From Paragordius varius (taxonomy: Eukaryota > Animalia > Nematomorpha): DNA of 64,000 bases. Below, piece by piece: positions 16,201 through 20,200 of this stretch (the stretch's first letter is position 1; each line of letters starts with the position of its first letter). A model generated the notes under the pieces. It ran no database searches and was not told where the DNA came from. It saw only the letters and a program-made list of their open reading frames with translations. Position numbers and translations under genes: made by a program. The stretch spans positions 3,720,001-3,784,000 of the forward strand of contig OZ176054.1 in NCBI GenBank assembly GCA_964247055.1, in the 5' to 3' direction.

Positions 16201-17202
16201 TGACACATCTACCTCAAAATTTTTACAAAAGTCTCCAATCAATAAAAAATATTTAACTTTGCGTATAAAAAAGGTAATATTCAGCGTTATCGAATTATGC
16301 GGGAAAAATTCGTTTTTGTAATTGTAAAGTTTAGAATTTTAAGATGTAAAATTGTCTGATAATAAATTTTAATATCGAGTTCTTAAAATAAAATCACTAA
16401 AAATTTTATAGCGCCCGCATTTTTTATAATTACCGACACAAGGGTATGGTAACAAATCTTCGCAACTTGCTAACAAAATTAAGTTTCACACAAATTAAAT
16501 ATTAATTTAAAATCGAGTTTTAAGCAAAATATCCTTAAAGTTTGCCAAAAATTAAAACTATTCCCAATGAGAATAAGATAAAGGCAACGGAATGAATGGC
16601 AACCAAACATAAATTTTTTATAATAAAAAATGGACGAATAAATCAAGCGATGTATTTATATTAGTAATAAAATATGGTATCATATACCTTTTGGAAATAA
16701 CCGCGTAAAGCTTGAGCGTCTTTTTGTTGACGGAAAAGAACAAAACCATATAGGTAACCGTTATAATCCTGCAAAAATATTTTTAATAATAATTCCCAAA
16801 TATGCGAAGAAAAACTGAGTTAAAAATAAATTTTTGGTAAGATTAATTTTATTGAAAAATATTGTATACTCTTATGACATCGTCACTACCATGGTTCTCC
16901 GAATCCAGTAAAATGCGAAAATGATATGAAATATCACCATTAATGCCTACAATAAAAAATTATAAACTTGAGTTAGAATCAGGAAGTGCTAAGAAAGAAA
17001 TATGATTTTTCTATAATATAAATTATTGTAAAACTTGTGATTCGGTAAAAATAACGAATTTAGGAAATATATGCTATTTTGTATTAAAGTATACCTCTAT
17101 AGTTTGTCCGAGTTCTATATCAAATTTCACAGTAATTATGGCATAAATCCATTTTTTAAATTTATCCCAGGCTATTTCTCTTACTACAGGTAAACCATCC
17201 AT
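10286..17202 (-). CDS. DENND6: DENN domain protein 6 (FAM116; Rab GEF family), 19 exons: 17202-17095, 17073-17035, 17010-16968, 16946-16870, 16768-16688, 15172-15067, 14646-14567, 14336-13924, 13797-13737, 13706-13645, 13304-13206, 12600-12521, 12454-12380, 12192-12125, 11764-11687, 11372-11319, 11250-11141, 10752-10497, 10420-10286
   Basis: Spliced translation gives WDKFKKW...[29 protein letters not shown]...[85 protein letters not shown], colinear with human DENND6A as remembered. All introns are GT-AG with consistent phases. The exon 4/5 boundary is the least certain. Confidence 0.93.
14369..14450. repeat. (AT)n microsatellite
   Basis: About 80 bp perfect AT run in a DENND6 intron; shorter AT runs at 15202-15242 and about 28178-28205. 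Confidence 0.98.
15268..15838 (+). mobile_element. TTAA-target MITE in DENND6 intron 5
   Basis: TTAA at 15264-15267 and 15839-15842; left end has lost CTT (CA-GGATAC); highly similar to the 54394 copy. Confidence 0.88.
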
Positions 17203-17290
17203 ATATCATGTTTTTAGGTCGTTTTACGCCCAAAATTTATTAAATCATACTTTCGTATTTTTTGCAGTTCGTTTCCATAACGTTAGATTG
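17203..17290. promoter_or_regulatory. Putative bidirectional promoter/5'UTR region shared by DENND6 and FAM76
   Basis: Only 88 bp separate the DENND6 ATG (17202, -) from the FAM76 ATG (17291, +). Confidence 0.7.
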
Positions 17291-20200
17291 ATGTCTTCAG
17301 CCCTTTTTGCGTGCACAAAGTGCAACGAAAGATTTTTGTTTGAAGAACTTTCCAAAAGCGAACATTTGTGTAAAGTTAGTTTTTTTTGTTAACAGGCATA
17401 GAATTGTATAAAATTAATTTCCACCTGTACCTATTGTAGGGAGGAGTTTCAATTGGAATCGTAAAATAAAAATATAATATATAGAAAGCACAGTAAAGAA
17501 TCCATATGCAAACGTTGCTCACATTACGTCCAAAAATATGGACTGGTAATAATTTTATCAATATTTTTAGCCATCAACTTGTAAATATTGCAACTTGATA
17601 TCTGCGTTTATCGGTTCGAAATGTGAACGATGTTCTATTCGAGAAAAAAAATATGGTCCACCTCTTATGTGTGAACAGTGTCAGCAAAAATCAGCCTTTG
17701 TTAAGGCTGATAAACTGGTAAACTTAAAAAATTTCAATTATATAATTTTGCAAACTATATTTGTAGAATTTTACCATATTTTTTGATTAATCAAGTATTA
17801 TTATTTTGAAGGTAATATAAAATTTCACAATAATATCTTAAAGTCAAAGATTTATGGCGAAATGCATATTATTTTTAATTTTTATTTTATCGAAAACATG
17901 TGTAACATCTTTGCATTTTTTGATGCAAGTAATTATTTTGTGTTTGATATTATTCAAAATTTATGTTTTTGATAATAATTAAAATTTTTACAATTTTCAA
18001 ATGACTATAGTTAAATATTTACAGAAGTATAGGTTTTTTGATTAAACAAGCTTCAACATTTATATAGTGTGTGTGCTGTAATACTAATTAAAATATTGTT
18101 GCCCTAAGATGTAGGCAACAATTATTAACAAATATTTAAATAAATCATTGCTTTTGGATAGACTAATTTTAAAAATATTTATCCAATTGTATGATAATTA
18201 TAGTTAATACAAGTTGATATTCAAATTACGCATTTATTTTAGAAAATAACATTTGTTTATCAATGTCTACTTAATTAAAATTAAGAAAAAAATTCGTTTA
18301 CATCTGTAATAAAGGGAATAATGTCCATTTAATAATATAATTAGTGAAGAAATGTTAGACTTTGACACTATATATTTTAAATTTATATAACTATTAAATT
18401 AGCCAGTAATTGCCAGGTTTTCTATTAATAAAATATTTTTATGTAAATTAATAAATTATTTTCTTGTCATATCGTTAAAATATACTTAAAGGTTAAATAA
18501 TTATAATTTATTAAGTATAATAATGTACACTTATATACTCTTTTTGATTATTTGTTAAATTTGGTACTTTTTTATTAACACGTAGAATGAAAAGAAGCGT
18601 TTATGTTGGTTATGTGCCCGCTCCTATAAAAAACTGCTACTAAAATCAGGCATAAAAACAACAGGTCATCATTCAAGTAAACACACAAAACACAATCATC
18701 CAAAACATGCTAAAATTGGTATAAATGAATCTAAAATGGGCTCATCTCAAAAAAATTTAATACAAACTGATTTGGGTATCCCCACCACTTCCCCCAAACG
18801 CTTAGACGATAATTTTGAAAGTTTTCTCAGGTTTGCCAAAGAAATTAATAGGAAAACAACGGAAGCCGCTAAACATTCTGATGCCAATGCGGTTAACAAC
18901 AAAAGAAAAAAGATTGAAACACACGTATTTGCTCAAGATTCGAATGGGTATAAAAATATAATGATTTATTTTATGTGAAAAAATTGATTTCAAGTTACTA
19001 TCATTATGCGTTTATTGTATTTTTGTTTGTTCTGTACATTGACGTTTATGAGAGATATAGGGGTAGTTATCGGAAGCAAATTAAGTAAGGTTTACTTTGA
19101 AAATATTGAAGGGGTTTCAATACGCTCTGCACTTAATAATTTGGATTAGTTTGGCCCTAAATATCCATATTTTAAATTTAAGCGCTTATTAAGAGGTTTT
19201 ATTATGAAAAAACAGAGAATAGTTAAAAAAATGTATTAAAGATATCTAAGATGTGTTTCATTATGTTAGTTTTAGGCTTAGCCTCCAGTTAATAGATGAA
19301 AAATGCTATTTCACAGTTTTATATTTTAATGATTTAGTTTTTTTAAAAATTTTATTATTTGTTTTTGTATCAAACTTATAGGAAAAACATTAATGCCAAA
19401 CTACCAATTTCGCCCAAAAAATCATCGAAAGATACCCTGTCAATCAGGTTAAATTTTTATATATTTGATTATGAATTCATCTATATACATATTATGTCAA
19501 GTCTTTTTTTGCGCACATGGGACCTCAAAAAAACTTTTTGTTAAAAACATTTAAATATGGTTTTACTATATTTATAATTTACTTATTTTATTATGCTGCA
19601 ATTGAATATATACAGTCCAGTGGTTGAACTCCTCCATTCAGATCAATTTTTGGTCATTAATCGTTTGCAAGATGAGGTCGACTCGCTCAAAAAAGTTATT
19701 ACTGAGAAAGATAGGCAATTATTAGAAAAGGAAAAAAAGGTATGGTGCAGAAAATATACTTAACCATTTTAATATAATATTTAATCACCCTTAAACACTT
19801 CTAAATTAACTCCCTTTTCAAAATAAGCCTGGATATTTAAATTTATATATGTAAATTCTACTAAAACAGAAGTTTAAAAAAATTATACATGATTTTATCG
19901 TTGAAATAATATTGTTTTAAATCCATTTTGCCTTTTTTGTACTCTTATAGTTTGTATTAGGTATTTAAAACTTTACCTTGACAATAAGAGTATGTTAGAA
20001 GAAGTAGCTAACCAAAGAATACCTTTTAGTATAATATTTATGAAAATTAAGCTTTTAATTAACAACAAACTACATTGGAAGTACGGACTCTTCATTATGC
20101 GTGTGACTAGGCCAGAATCCGAATGAAACTGCTCAATCTCATCGTACCAATAAATAGGAAATTCTCATAAATTTTTAAGGGTCATTTAAGTACTTGTAAT

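Follow-up and report, generated by a model that had tools for sequence, protein, structure and literature searches.

Probable spliceosomal introns of 21-30 nt in two divergent genes of a nematomorph

The window, by which is meant the whole 64,000-nt stretch of DNA analysed here, contains a FAM76-like gene on the plus strand and a DENND6-like gene on the minus strand that are interrupted by seven GT..AG segments of extremely small size. Six of them are shorter than 30 nt (21, 24 and 21 nt in the DENND6-like gene; 27, 24 and 25 nt in the FAM76-like gene), and the seventh is exactly 30 nt. The question raised by this locus is whether such segments are real introns and, if so, what kind of machinery would remove them. 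An earlier note had described them as ultra-short spliceosomal introns, and every coordinate, length and terminal dinucleotide that it gave for the seven is exact. The reading favored here, with a probability of roughly 85%, is that all seven are true spliceosomal introns of the U2-type GT-AG class, reduced in length to 21-30 nt, and that the nuclear genome carrying them belongs to a nematomorph other than Gordionus montsenyensis.

Three probable short introns in the FAM76-like gene

The assignment of the plus-strand gene as FAM76-like holds, as judged from the Pfam FAM76 profile. Exons 1, 3 and 4 match consecutive profile positions (1-24, 48-64 and 66-112, the last with an E value of 3e-20), and exon 2 fills positions 25-47 between exons 1 and 3. 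Exon 1 (17291-17374) runs for 28 codons from the ATG and aligns with the start of Gordionus FAM76. Intron 1 (17375-17401; 27 nt, GT..AG, phase 0) would introduce two in-frame stops if retained, and it coincides exactly with a gap in the alignment against the Gordionus protein. Exon 2 (17402-17460, 59 nt) aligns with Gordionus without gaps and is followed by intron 2 (17461-17484; 24 nt, GT..AG, phase 2). The earlier note had allowed that this intron might extend to the next AG, giving 33 nt; the alignment score against Gordionus is 513 for the 24-nt form vs 483 for the longer one, which favors the shorter. Exon 3 (17485-17545, 61 nt) leads to intron 3 (17546-17570; 25 nt, GT..AG, phase 0), whose retention would shift the frame, and exon 4 (17571-17717, 49 codons) shows 75% identity with Gordionus XP_065324379. 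Intron 4 (17718-18585) is of ordinary length, 868 nt, with an orthologue of about 1.2 kb in Gordionus; beyond it, an exon beginning at 18586 picks up the alignment from Gordionus residue 118.

With the three short segments removed, 115 residues of the N-terminus align with Gordionus FAM76 at 77% identity and without a single gap, while identities to other animals are 55-58%, with gaps present. GT..AG segments within 17291-17717 can be removed in 25,318 ways that leave an in-frame product free of stops, and all were scored against the Gordionus orthologue; the three-intron set of 27, 24 and 25 nt ranks first and is gapless, and every other combination scores lower and brings in gaps. Gordionus FAM76 itself has introns at the identical three positions and phases, with lengths of 51, 43 and 363 nt. 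We count these shared positions and phases, the first rank among the 25,318 combinations and the gapless 77% alignment as evidence that the FAM76 segments are genuine introns.

One alternative is that the gene models are wrong, the segments being retained or translated, or the tiny exons being skipped through the use of distant splice sites. Splicing is predicted here from DNA sequence, and chance GT..AG pairs often join open frames in AT-rich DNA: across the window, 1581 GT..AG segments of 15-45 nt join two open frames, vs 1630 in a reversed control. Since there is no excess over the control, continuity of open frames is unusable as evidence in such DNA; the signal that stands above chance for the introns is homology, unlike open frames alone. 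It is on homology that the alternative fares badly, given the orthologous intron positions in Gordionus and the low scores of all other FAM76 combinations; retention, moreover, would bring stops or a frameshift. For these genes we consider mistaken models highly improbable. Sampled words of the locus occur in DNA runs only, with none found in the RNA-labelled runs of the species.

The DENND6-like gene and the spacer between the two genes

The start codons of the two genes diverge from a spacer of only 88 nt (17203-17290, sequence read directly), which is probably a shared promoter. Exon 1 of the DENND6-like gene (17095-17202, minus strand throughout) comprises 36 codons from the ATG. Intron 1 (17074-17094; 21 nt, GT..AG, phase 0) carries an in-frame stop and is free of indels in DNA contigs from three runs. 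Exon 2 (17035-17073) has just 13 codons and is followed by intron 2 (17011-17034; 24 nt, GT..AG, phase 0), with two in-frame stops; exon 3 (16968-17010, 43 nt) is followed by intron 3 (16947-16967; 21 nt, GT..AG, phase 1), with one. Exon 4 (16870-16946, 77 nt) precedes a longer intron 4 (16769-16869; 101 nt, GT..AG, sequence read directly), after which exon 5 at 16768-16688 carries on the frame from exon 4.

The spliced product of exons 1 to 4 gives unbroken matches to two Pfam profiles, each crossing all three junctions: residues 22-72 correspond to Afi1 profile positions 2-51 (E 1.9e-4), and residues 19-82, ending within exon 4, to Avl9 positions 1-65. These matches fall under the curated cut-offs (22.3 vs 25.5 bits); single exons scanned alone against Pfam give none. 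Exon 2 is required for the collinear Afi1 match, exon 3 lies within the Afi1/Avl9 match, and the match requires exons 2 and 3 at exactly their present spacing, which again speaks against wrong gene models. The DENND6-like identity of the gene thus holds on the basis of a predicted Afi1/Avl9-type DENN N-terminus. Both gene names proposed in the earlier note are borne out, and removing the segments restores collinearity with homologous proteins, seen here as the gapless FAM76 alignment and the unbroken DENND6 profile matches. A search of a protein database with the 72-residue spliced DENND6 peptide returned no word-sharing candidates, no DENND6 gene lies within 10 kb upstream at the Gordionus FAM76 locus, and a language-model look-up of one DENND6 exon gave only low, meaningless scores.

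Farther along the same gene lies the 30-nt intron (13707-13736; GT..AG, phase 0), numbered intron 9 in the earlier note, in which an in-frame stop falls at the last codon. The peptide spliced across it shows one weak DENN match over the junction (E 0.07), and the flanking pieces scanned singly show none.

Splice signals, DNA support and the machinery required

All seven introns begin with GT and end with TAG. Six have lengths divisible by three, and each of these contains an in-frame stop; the remaining one, of 25 nt, shifts the frame, so that the claim that retention of any of them gives a stop or frameshift is confirmed for the whole set. Their G+C content is 16%, vs 34% in the exons. The tiny introns gather at the 5' ends of both genes, where downstream introns measure 0.1-1 kb. 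The splice signals are minimal, consisting of GT followed by A or T and of TAG, with hardly any polypyrimidine tract; among the six introns shorter than 30 nt, two have a YNYTRAY match, 9-10 nt from the 3' end, though seven introns are too few to derive a motif.

An assignment to the U2 type fits the GT..AG ends in all seven, the restoration on removal of a frame collinear with homologues (for which the support is weaker in DENND6 than in FAM76) and, for FAM76 introns 1-3, the Gordionus introns at equal position and phase. Reading by eye for U12-type (minor) introns, with the RTATCCTT 5' motif and the TCCTTAAC branch site, did not yield a member of that class; the 5' motif is approached by DENND6 intron 1 alone, at 8 of 9 letters, and space for a separate branch site is lacking.

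Could the segments instead be errors of assembly or polishing, or small insertions in two decaying pseudogenes? In favor of this can be cited only the error rate that long-read assemblies generally have in AT-rich DNA. Contigs of three DNA runs from two samples read through the introns gap-free and at full depth, and the segments are reproduced both by short-read contigs of the two samples and by a run labelled as another organism. Their presence in DNA contigs of two independent samples indicates that the assembly collapsed nothing; collapse of longer introns is what the earlier note had offered as one sign against its own reading, and that sign is absent. All seven supposed insertions, furthermore, begin with GT and finish with AG. 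FAM76 intron 2 carries three SNPs in other haplotypes, and in the contigs of two runs of a single sample intron 3 is 26 nt long owing to a 1-nt insertion behind 17547; the variants listed for FAM76 exon 4 are two SNPs, both synonymous, and one 3-nt deletion, which stays in frame. SNPs and a 1-nt insertion inside introns, vs synonymous or 3-nt changes in the exon, fit introns. Artefact or decay is exceedingly improbable.

The same contigs bear on excision at the DNA level, in the manner of the internal eliminated sequences of ciliates, in place of RNA splicing. Short eliminated sequences of ciliates do overlap these introns in size range. The ends here are GT..AG, unlike TA..TA, and the segments stand at full depth in the DNA contigs of all runs, with no skipping joint among the joints listed; the chance of such excision seems close to negligible.

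Under the favored reading of genuine U2-type introns, the tiny introns would occupy ancestral intron positions, at which Gordionus has 43-363 nt. The ordinary major spliceosome would remove them, recognizing each across the intron from minimal signals: an initial GT followed by A or T, a terminal TAG, and a body of 84% A+T in which a branch adenosine may lie about 8-10 nt short of the 3' end. Every one of them carries an in-frame stop or frameshift, by which transcripts left unspliced would be rendered harmless.

Another possibility is that the introns are real and that a remodelled spliceosome is needed for them, with altered or missing U1/U2 early-recognition factors, a substitute for U2AF or a separate micro-intron pathway. 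From established spliceosome structures, the U1 and U2 particles cannot both occupy 21 nt at once, a steric limit to which may be added the reduction of the signals to GT plus A/T and TAG, the near lack of a polypyrimidine tract, and the position of tiny 5'-end introns beside long ones in the same transcripts, which may indicate a separate recognition mode. The content of the window says nothing about the machinery, and neither snRNA nor tRNA genes were found within it. Conservation of the U2 branch-point-pairing region and of U2AF1 and U2AF2 is reported both for myxozoans with 22-27-nt introns and for Stentor, with introns of 15-16 nt (PMC13644364), which tells against remodelling. A modified spliceosome, to which the earlier note had pointed, is not required by the present evidence, and we regard it as unlikely.

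Relation to other short-intron systems and to the host genome

In a 2026 survey of 51 animal genomes, introns of < 30 nt were found only in myxobolid myxozoans and one dicyemid, and were tentatively linked to a parasitic life, small bodies and reduced genomes (PMC13644364). Within the Myxobolidae, Hadjez et al., 2026 give median lengths of 27 nt for Henneguya salminicola and 22 nt for Thelohanellus kitauei and Myxobolus rasmusseni (PMC13644364). The mean for Dicyema japonicum, as cited there, is about 26 nt (Lu et al., 2019, PMC6736024). The literature searched, which did not take in the 2023 study describing the first hairworm genomes, contained no report of introns < 30 nt in Nematomorpha. 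The earlier note had named ciliates, nucleomorphs and dicyemids as the known cases; that stands as far as it goes, with the myxobolids, at medians of 22-27 nt, omitted.

The present introns resemble those of the Myxobolidae in that both are GT-AG introns of animals, measure about 20-30 nt and occupy conserved positions in a parasitic lineage, with reduced 5' (GTa) and 3' (AG) signals and an A-rich stretch ahead of the 3' end. The Myxobolidae, however, are cnidarians with compact genomes, in which short introns form the median class, whereas here the host is a transposon-rich ecdysozoan, and tiny introns, concentrated at the 5' end and all seven ending in TAG, stand beside 0.1-1-kb introns in the same genes. 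Dicyemids are likewise bilaterian parasites with GT-AG introns < 30 nt and reduced splice-site motifs, but they are spiralians of about 30 cells with a reduced genome, in contrast to the long-bodied worm and repeat-rich genome considered here. Introns of Paramecium measure 20-33 nt and those of chlorarachniophyte nucleomorphs 18-21 nt. These too are spliceosomal introns far below 40 nt, and in Paramecium those with a length divisible by three contain in-frame stops, as here; they belong to protists or relict nuclei, in which short introns form a single uniform class, unlike the mixed lengths in this animal. Gordionus montsenyensis FAM76 shares the three positions and phases, the 5' GTA, the AT-rich body and a 5' position for its shortest introns, and differs in length (51, 43 and 363 nt vs 27, 24 and 25 nt).

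The nearest proteins place the host outside Myxobolidae and Dicyemida: they come from Gordionus (Nematomorpha), at 77% identity for FAM76 and 43-48% for a single-exon GT31 gene, whose best matches are nine full-length Gordionus paralogues. On these two genes, the host is most likely a nematomorph. The window is about 27% G+C, vs 26.9% in Gordionus. It contains an apparently intact LINE, a repeat inside a DENND6 intron is present at several thousand times single-copy depth, and 64% of the Gordionus genome is repeats; the host genome is transposon-rich and not reduced, as the earlier note had also said.

We suggest tentatively, at slightly less than even odds, that Nematomorpha saw a third origin of sub-30-nt introns among animals, later than the split from the Gordionus lineage, that intron miniaturisation may not depend on genome reduction or on small body size, the parasite being large-bodied and its genome transposon-rich, and that micro-introns may be 5'-polarised. 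If so, a nematomorph would provide the third, ecdysozoan case of animal introns < 30 nt, in a repeat-rich genome of ordinary size. A close relative with orthologous introns 2-14 times longer offers a within-phylum contrast, making testable both what pushes introns to their physical minimum and how one spliceosome handles 21-nt and kilobase introns in a single transcript. Such genes would be broken by gene finders that impose a lower limit on intron length, and annotation and completeness tools that forbid tiny introns will mis-model them, a point relevant to the massive gene loss that has been claimed for Nematomorpha in print. Hairworm genomes reportedly show "rampant loss of universal metazoan genes" and low BUSCO scores; part of this could be an annotation artefact.

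As for the rest of the window, the large ORFs at 5516-7023, 28558-28992, 30797-31354 and 74-517 give no Pfam matches. A serine-protease gene seemingly has only long introns between its placeable exons.

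Short segments in two head-to-head genes

The DENND6-like gene starts at 17202 on the reverse strand and the FAM76-like gene at 17291 on the forward strand, as read directly from the sequence; they lie head to head, with 88 nt (17203-17290) separating their start codons. DENND6 is absent from the 10 kb upstream of FAM76 in Gordionus, a nematomorph relative, so the pairing is not conserved there. Direct reading also bore out exactly the coordinates and lengths which the earlier note had assigned to four DENND6 segments (17094-17074, 21 nt; 17034-17011, 24 nt; 16967-16947, 21 nt; 13736-13707, 30 nt) and three FAM76 segments (17375-17401, 27 nt; 17461-17484, 24 nt; 17546-17570, 25 nt); all seven are real as described. 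Each begins with GT and ends with AG, in every case within a 3'-terminal TAG, and each introduces an in-frame stop if retained, except for the 25-nt one, which shifts the frame. Their G+C content is 16%, as against 34% for the exons, in a window that is AT-rich throughout (22-37% G+C in 2-kb bins, mostly about 27%). The lengths of the six stop-containing segments are all multiples of three, and in those in phase 0 the terminal TAG is itself an in-frame stop; at least six such lengths out of seven are expected in about 0.7% of cases under random lengths, for a small sample and a post hoc test.

Across the whole window, 1581 GT..AG segments measure 15-45 nt, link two open frames and disrupt the reading frame when left in; the reversed sequence has 1630, and the window shows no surplus in any length class. 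In this DNA an open reading frame is by itself no evidence for an intron, and in view of this the case for introns rests on homology, by which it is well supported.

Homology across the junctions

Taken singly, FAM76 exons 1, 3 and 4 match positions 1-24, 48-64 and 66-112 of the Pfam FAM76 profile (E 3e-20 for exon 4), and the size of exon 2 fits the gap between exons 1 and 3. Among 1.84 billion representative proteins, the best match of exon 4, at 75% identity, is a 307-residue FAM76B-like protein of the nematomorph Gordionus sp. m RMFG-2023 (RefSeq XP_065324379). Once the 27-, 24- and 25-nt segments are removed, the first 117 codons are 77% identical to this protein over 115 residues without a gap, while identity to other animals is 55-58%, with gaps; in a tblastn comparison of the window with the Gordionus protein, the short segments show up as extra, stop-containing sequence facing gaps in that protein. 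Enumeration of all sets of up to four GT..AG removals within 17291-17717 yielded 25,318 stop-free in-frame products, among which the intron set of the earlier note aligned best to Gordionus FAM76 (score 513). The runner-up (483) was the version with a 33-nt second intron, which scores lower because three residues present in Gordionus are deleted; the second intron is thus better taken as 24 nt.

Gordionus FAM76 (locus L002, 10001-11990) has introns at the identical three codon positions and phases, measuring 51, 43 and 363 nt; intron 4 has an ordinary length in each of the two, with 868 nt in the window and about 1.2 kb (about 1180 nt) in Gordionus. Given these shared positions and phases, the short FAM76 segments are ancestral introns, much shorter in the present species. 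Introns 1-3 of both genes measure 21-27 nt and the later ones 0.1-1 kb, the 30-nt DENND6 intron excepted (16870-18585); the Gordionus gene shows a like gradient at larger sizes. First introns are usually the longest in most animals, the opposite of the polarity in the present genes.

Single DENND6 exons gave no match to Pfam. From residue 22 to residue 72, the spliced 89-residue N-terminus aligns without interruption to profile positions 2-51 of Afi1 (E 1.9e-4; 22.3 bits, below the cut-off of 25.5), and its residues 19-82 align to positions 1-65 of Avl9. Each alignment crosses the three junctions with no more than one net indel; were an intron retained or a 13-14-codon exon left out, this collinearity would be lost. 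The peptide spliced across the 30-nt intron has a weak DENN match (17-60 to profile 95-138, E 0.07), and the flanking pieces taken singly have none. The alignment to human DENND6A in the earlier note appears to agree with the sequence of that protein.

Reads and splicing

The runs bearing the locus (X1-X3) are DNA only, from two samples of one study; a run search did not find the locus in RNA runs. Read depth in X1-X3 is even over exons, introns and spacer, and gap-free contigs of DNA reads run through the introns (16950-17242, 16855-17349, 16860-17316, 17426-17758 and 17397-17802). Collapse of longer introns in the assembly, a possibility the earlier note had raised against its own reading, is therefore ruled out. 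Among the variants listed near the FAM76 5' end, three SNPs fall in intron 2 and a 1-nt insertion in intron 3, while two SNPs, both synonymous at third positions, and one 3-nt deletion fall in exon 4; the pattern is that predicted for introns versus exons, though the numbers are small. Non-coding stretches in these samples (16300-16680 and 18000-19250) show two haplotypes that differ by about 4% and by small indels, owing either to the pooling of individuals or to very high heterozygosity. Of the words sampled from the locus, 7-22% recur in runs under four other organism labels; in one of these runs, X10, the longer contigs (17457-17671 and other spots) are 0-2 letters from the window, at depth 2-17. 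These could be parasite-bearing hosts, or cross-contamination between samples.

Ciliates, nucleomorphs and Dicyema are documented to have introns below 30 nt, and in September 2026 the myxobolid myxozoans were added to them; in a survey of 51 animal genomes, which does not mention Nematomorpha, only Dicyemida match Myxobolidae in short introns, and its authors expect the list to grow as more genomes become available (PMC13644364). Introns go without mention in the Gordionus genome paper, and a literature search that did not extend to the 2023 article describing the first hairworm genomes found no link between Nematomorpha and short introns. The case is of interest for its lineage, for a genome rich in transposons and for the contrast with Gordionus inside one phylum. 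The earlier note had reasoned that steric limits point to a modified spliceosome. This is reasonable, but it would hold just as much for the lineages already known to have short introns, whose core splicing machinery is reported to be conventional (PMC13644364). The introns are probably removed by ordinary U2-type splicing that recognises its sites across the intron, with a branch adenosine perhaps some 8-10 nt before the 3' end, and unspliced RNA is presumably cleared by a nonsense-mediated route; the metazoan branch consensus is matched in only two of six introns scanned. At its 5' end, DENND6 intron 1 (17074-17094) agrees with the minor-spliceosome consensus at 8 of 9 letters, probably by chance in AT-rich sequence; at only 21 nt, this intron has no space for a U12 branch site.

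The host genome and its repeats

For the single-exon GT31 glycosyltransferase gene at 40142-41503, the best matches are nine Gordionus paralogues (43-48% identity over 84-97% of its length); the remaining matches cover at most one third of the length, except for one at 52%. The family is expanded in Gordionus, eight of these nine full-length paralogues lying on one chromosome and three in tandem within a 21-kb locus (L001). Together with FAM76, a matching G+C content and the 64% repeats of Gordionus (G+C 26.9%; Gordionus genome paper), these matches indicate that the genome is most likely that of a nematomorph other than Gordionus montsenyensis. A second GT31 paralogue in the window (63103-63957) likewise lacks introns.

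A LINE at 57159-59997 has endonuclease and reverse-transcriptase ORFs overlapping by 26 nt; since both are long and open, the copy is apparently intact and may have been recently active. The repeat at 15400-15990, within a DENND6 intron, is present at several thousand times single-copy depth (summed contig depth about 1-4 million, against about 400 in flanking single-copy DNA). It also shows an opposite-strand joint and numerous variants with internal deletions, and resembles a MITE-like family. The DENND6 introns also contain two perfect microsatellites, (AT)41 at 14369-14450 and (TA)21 at 15202-15243.
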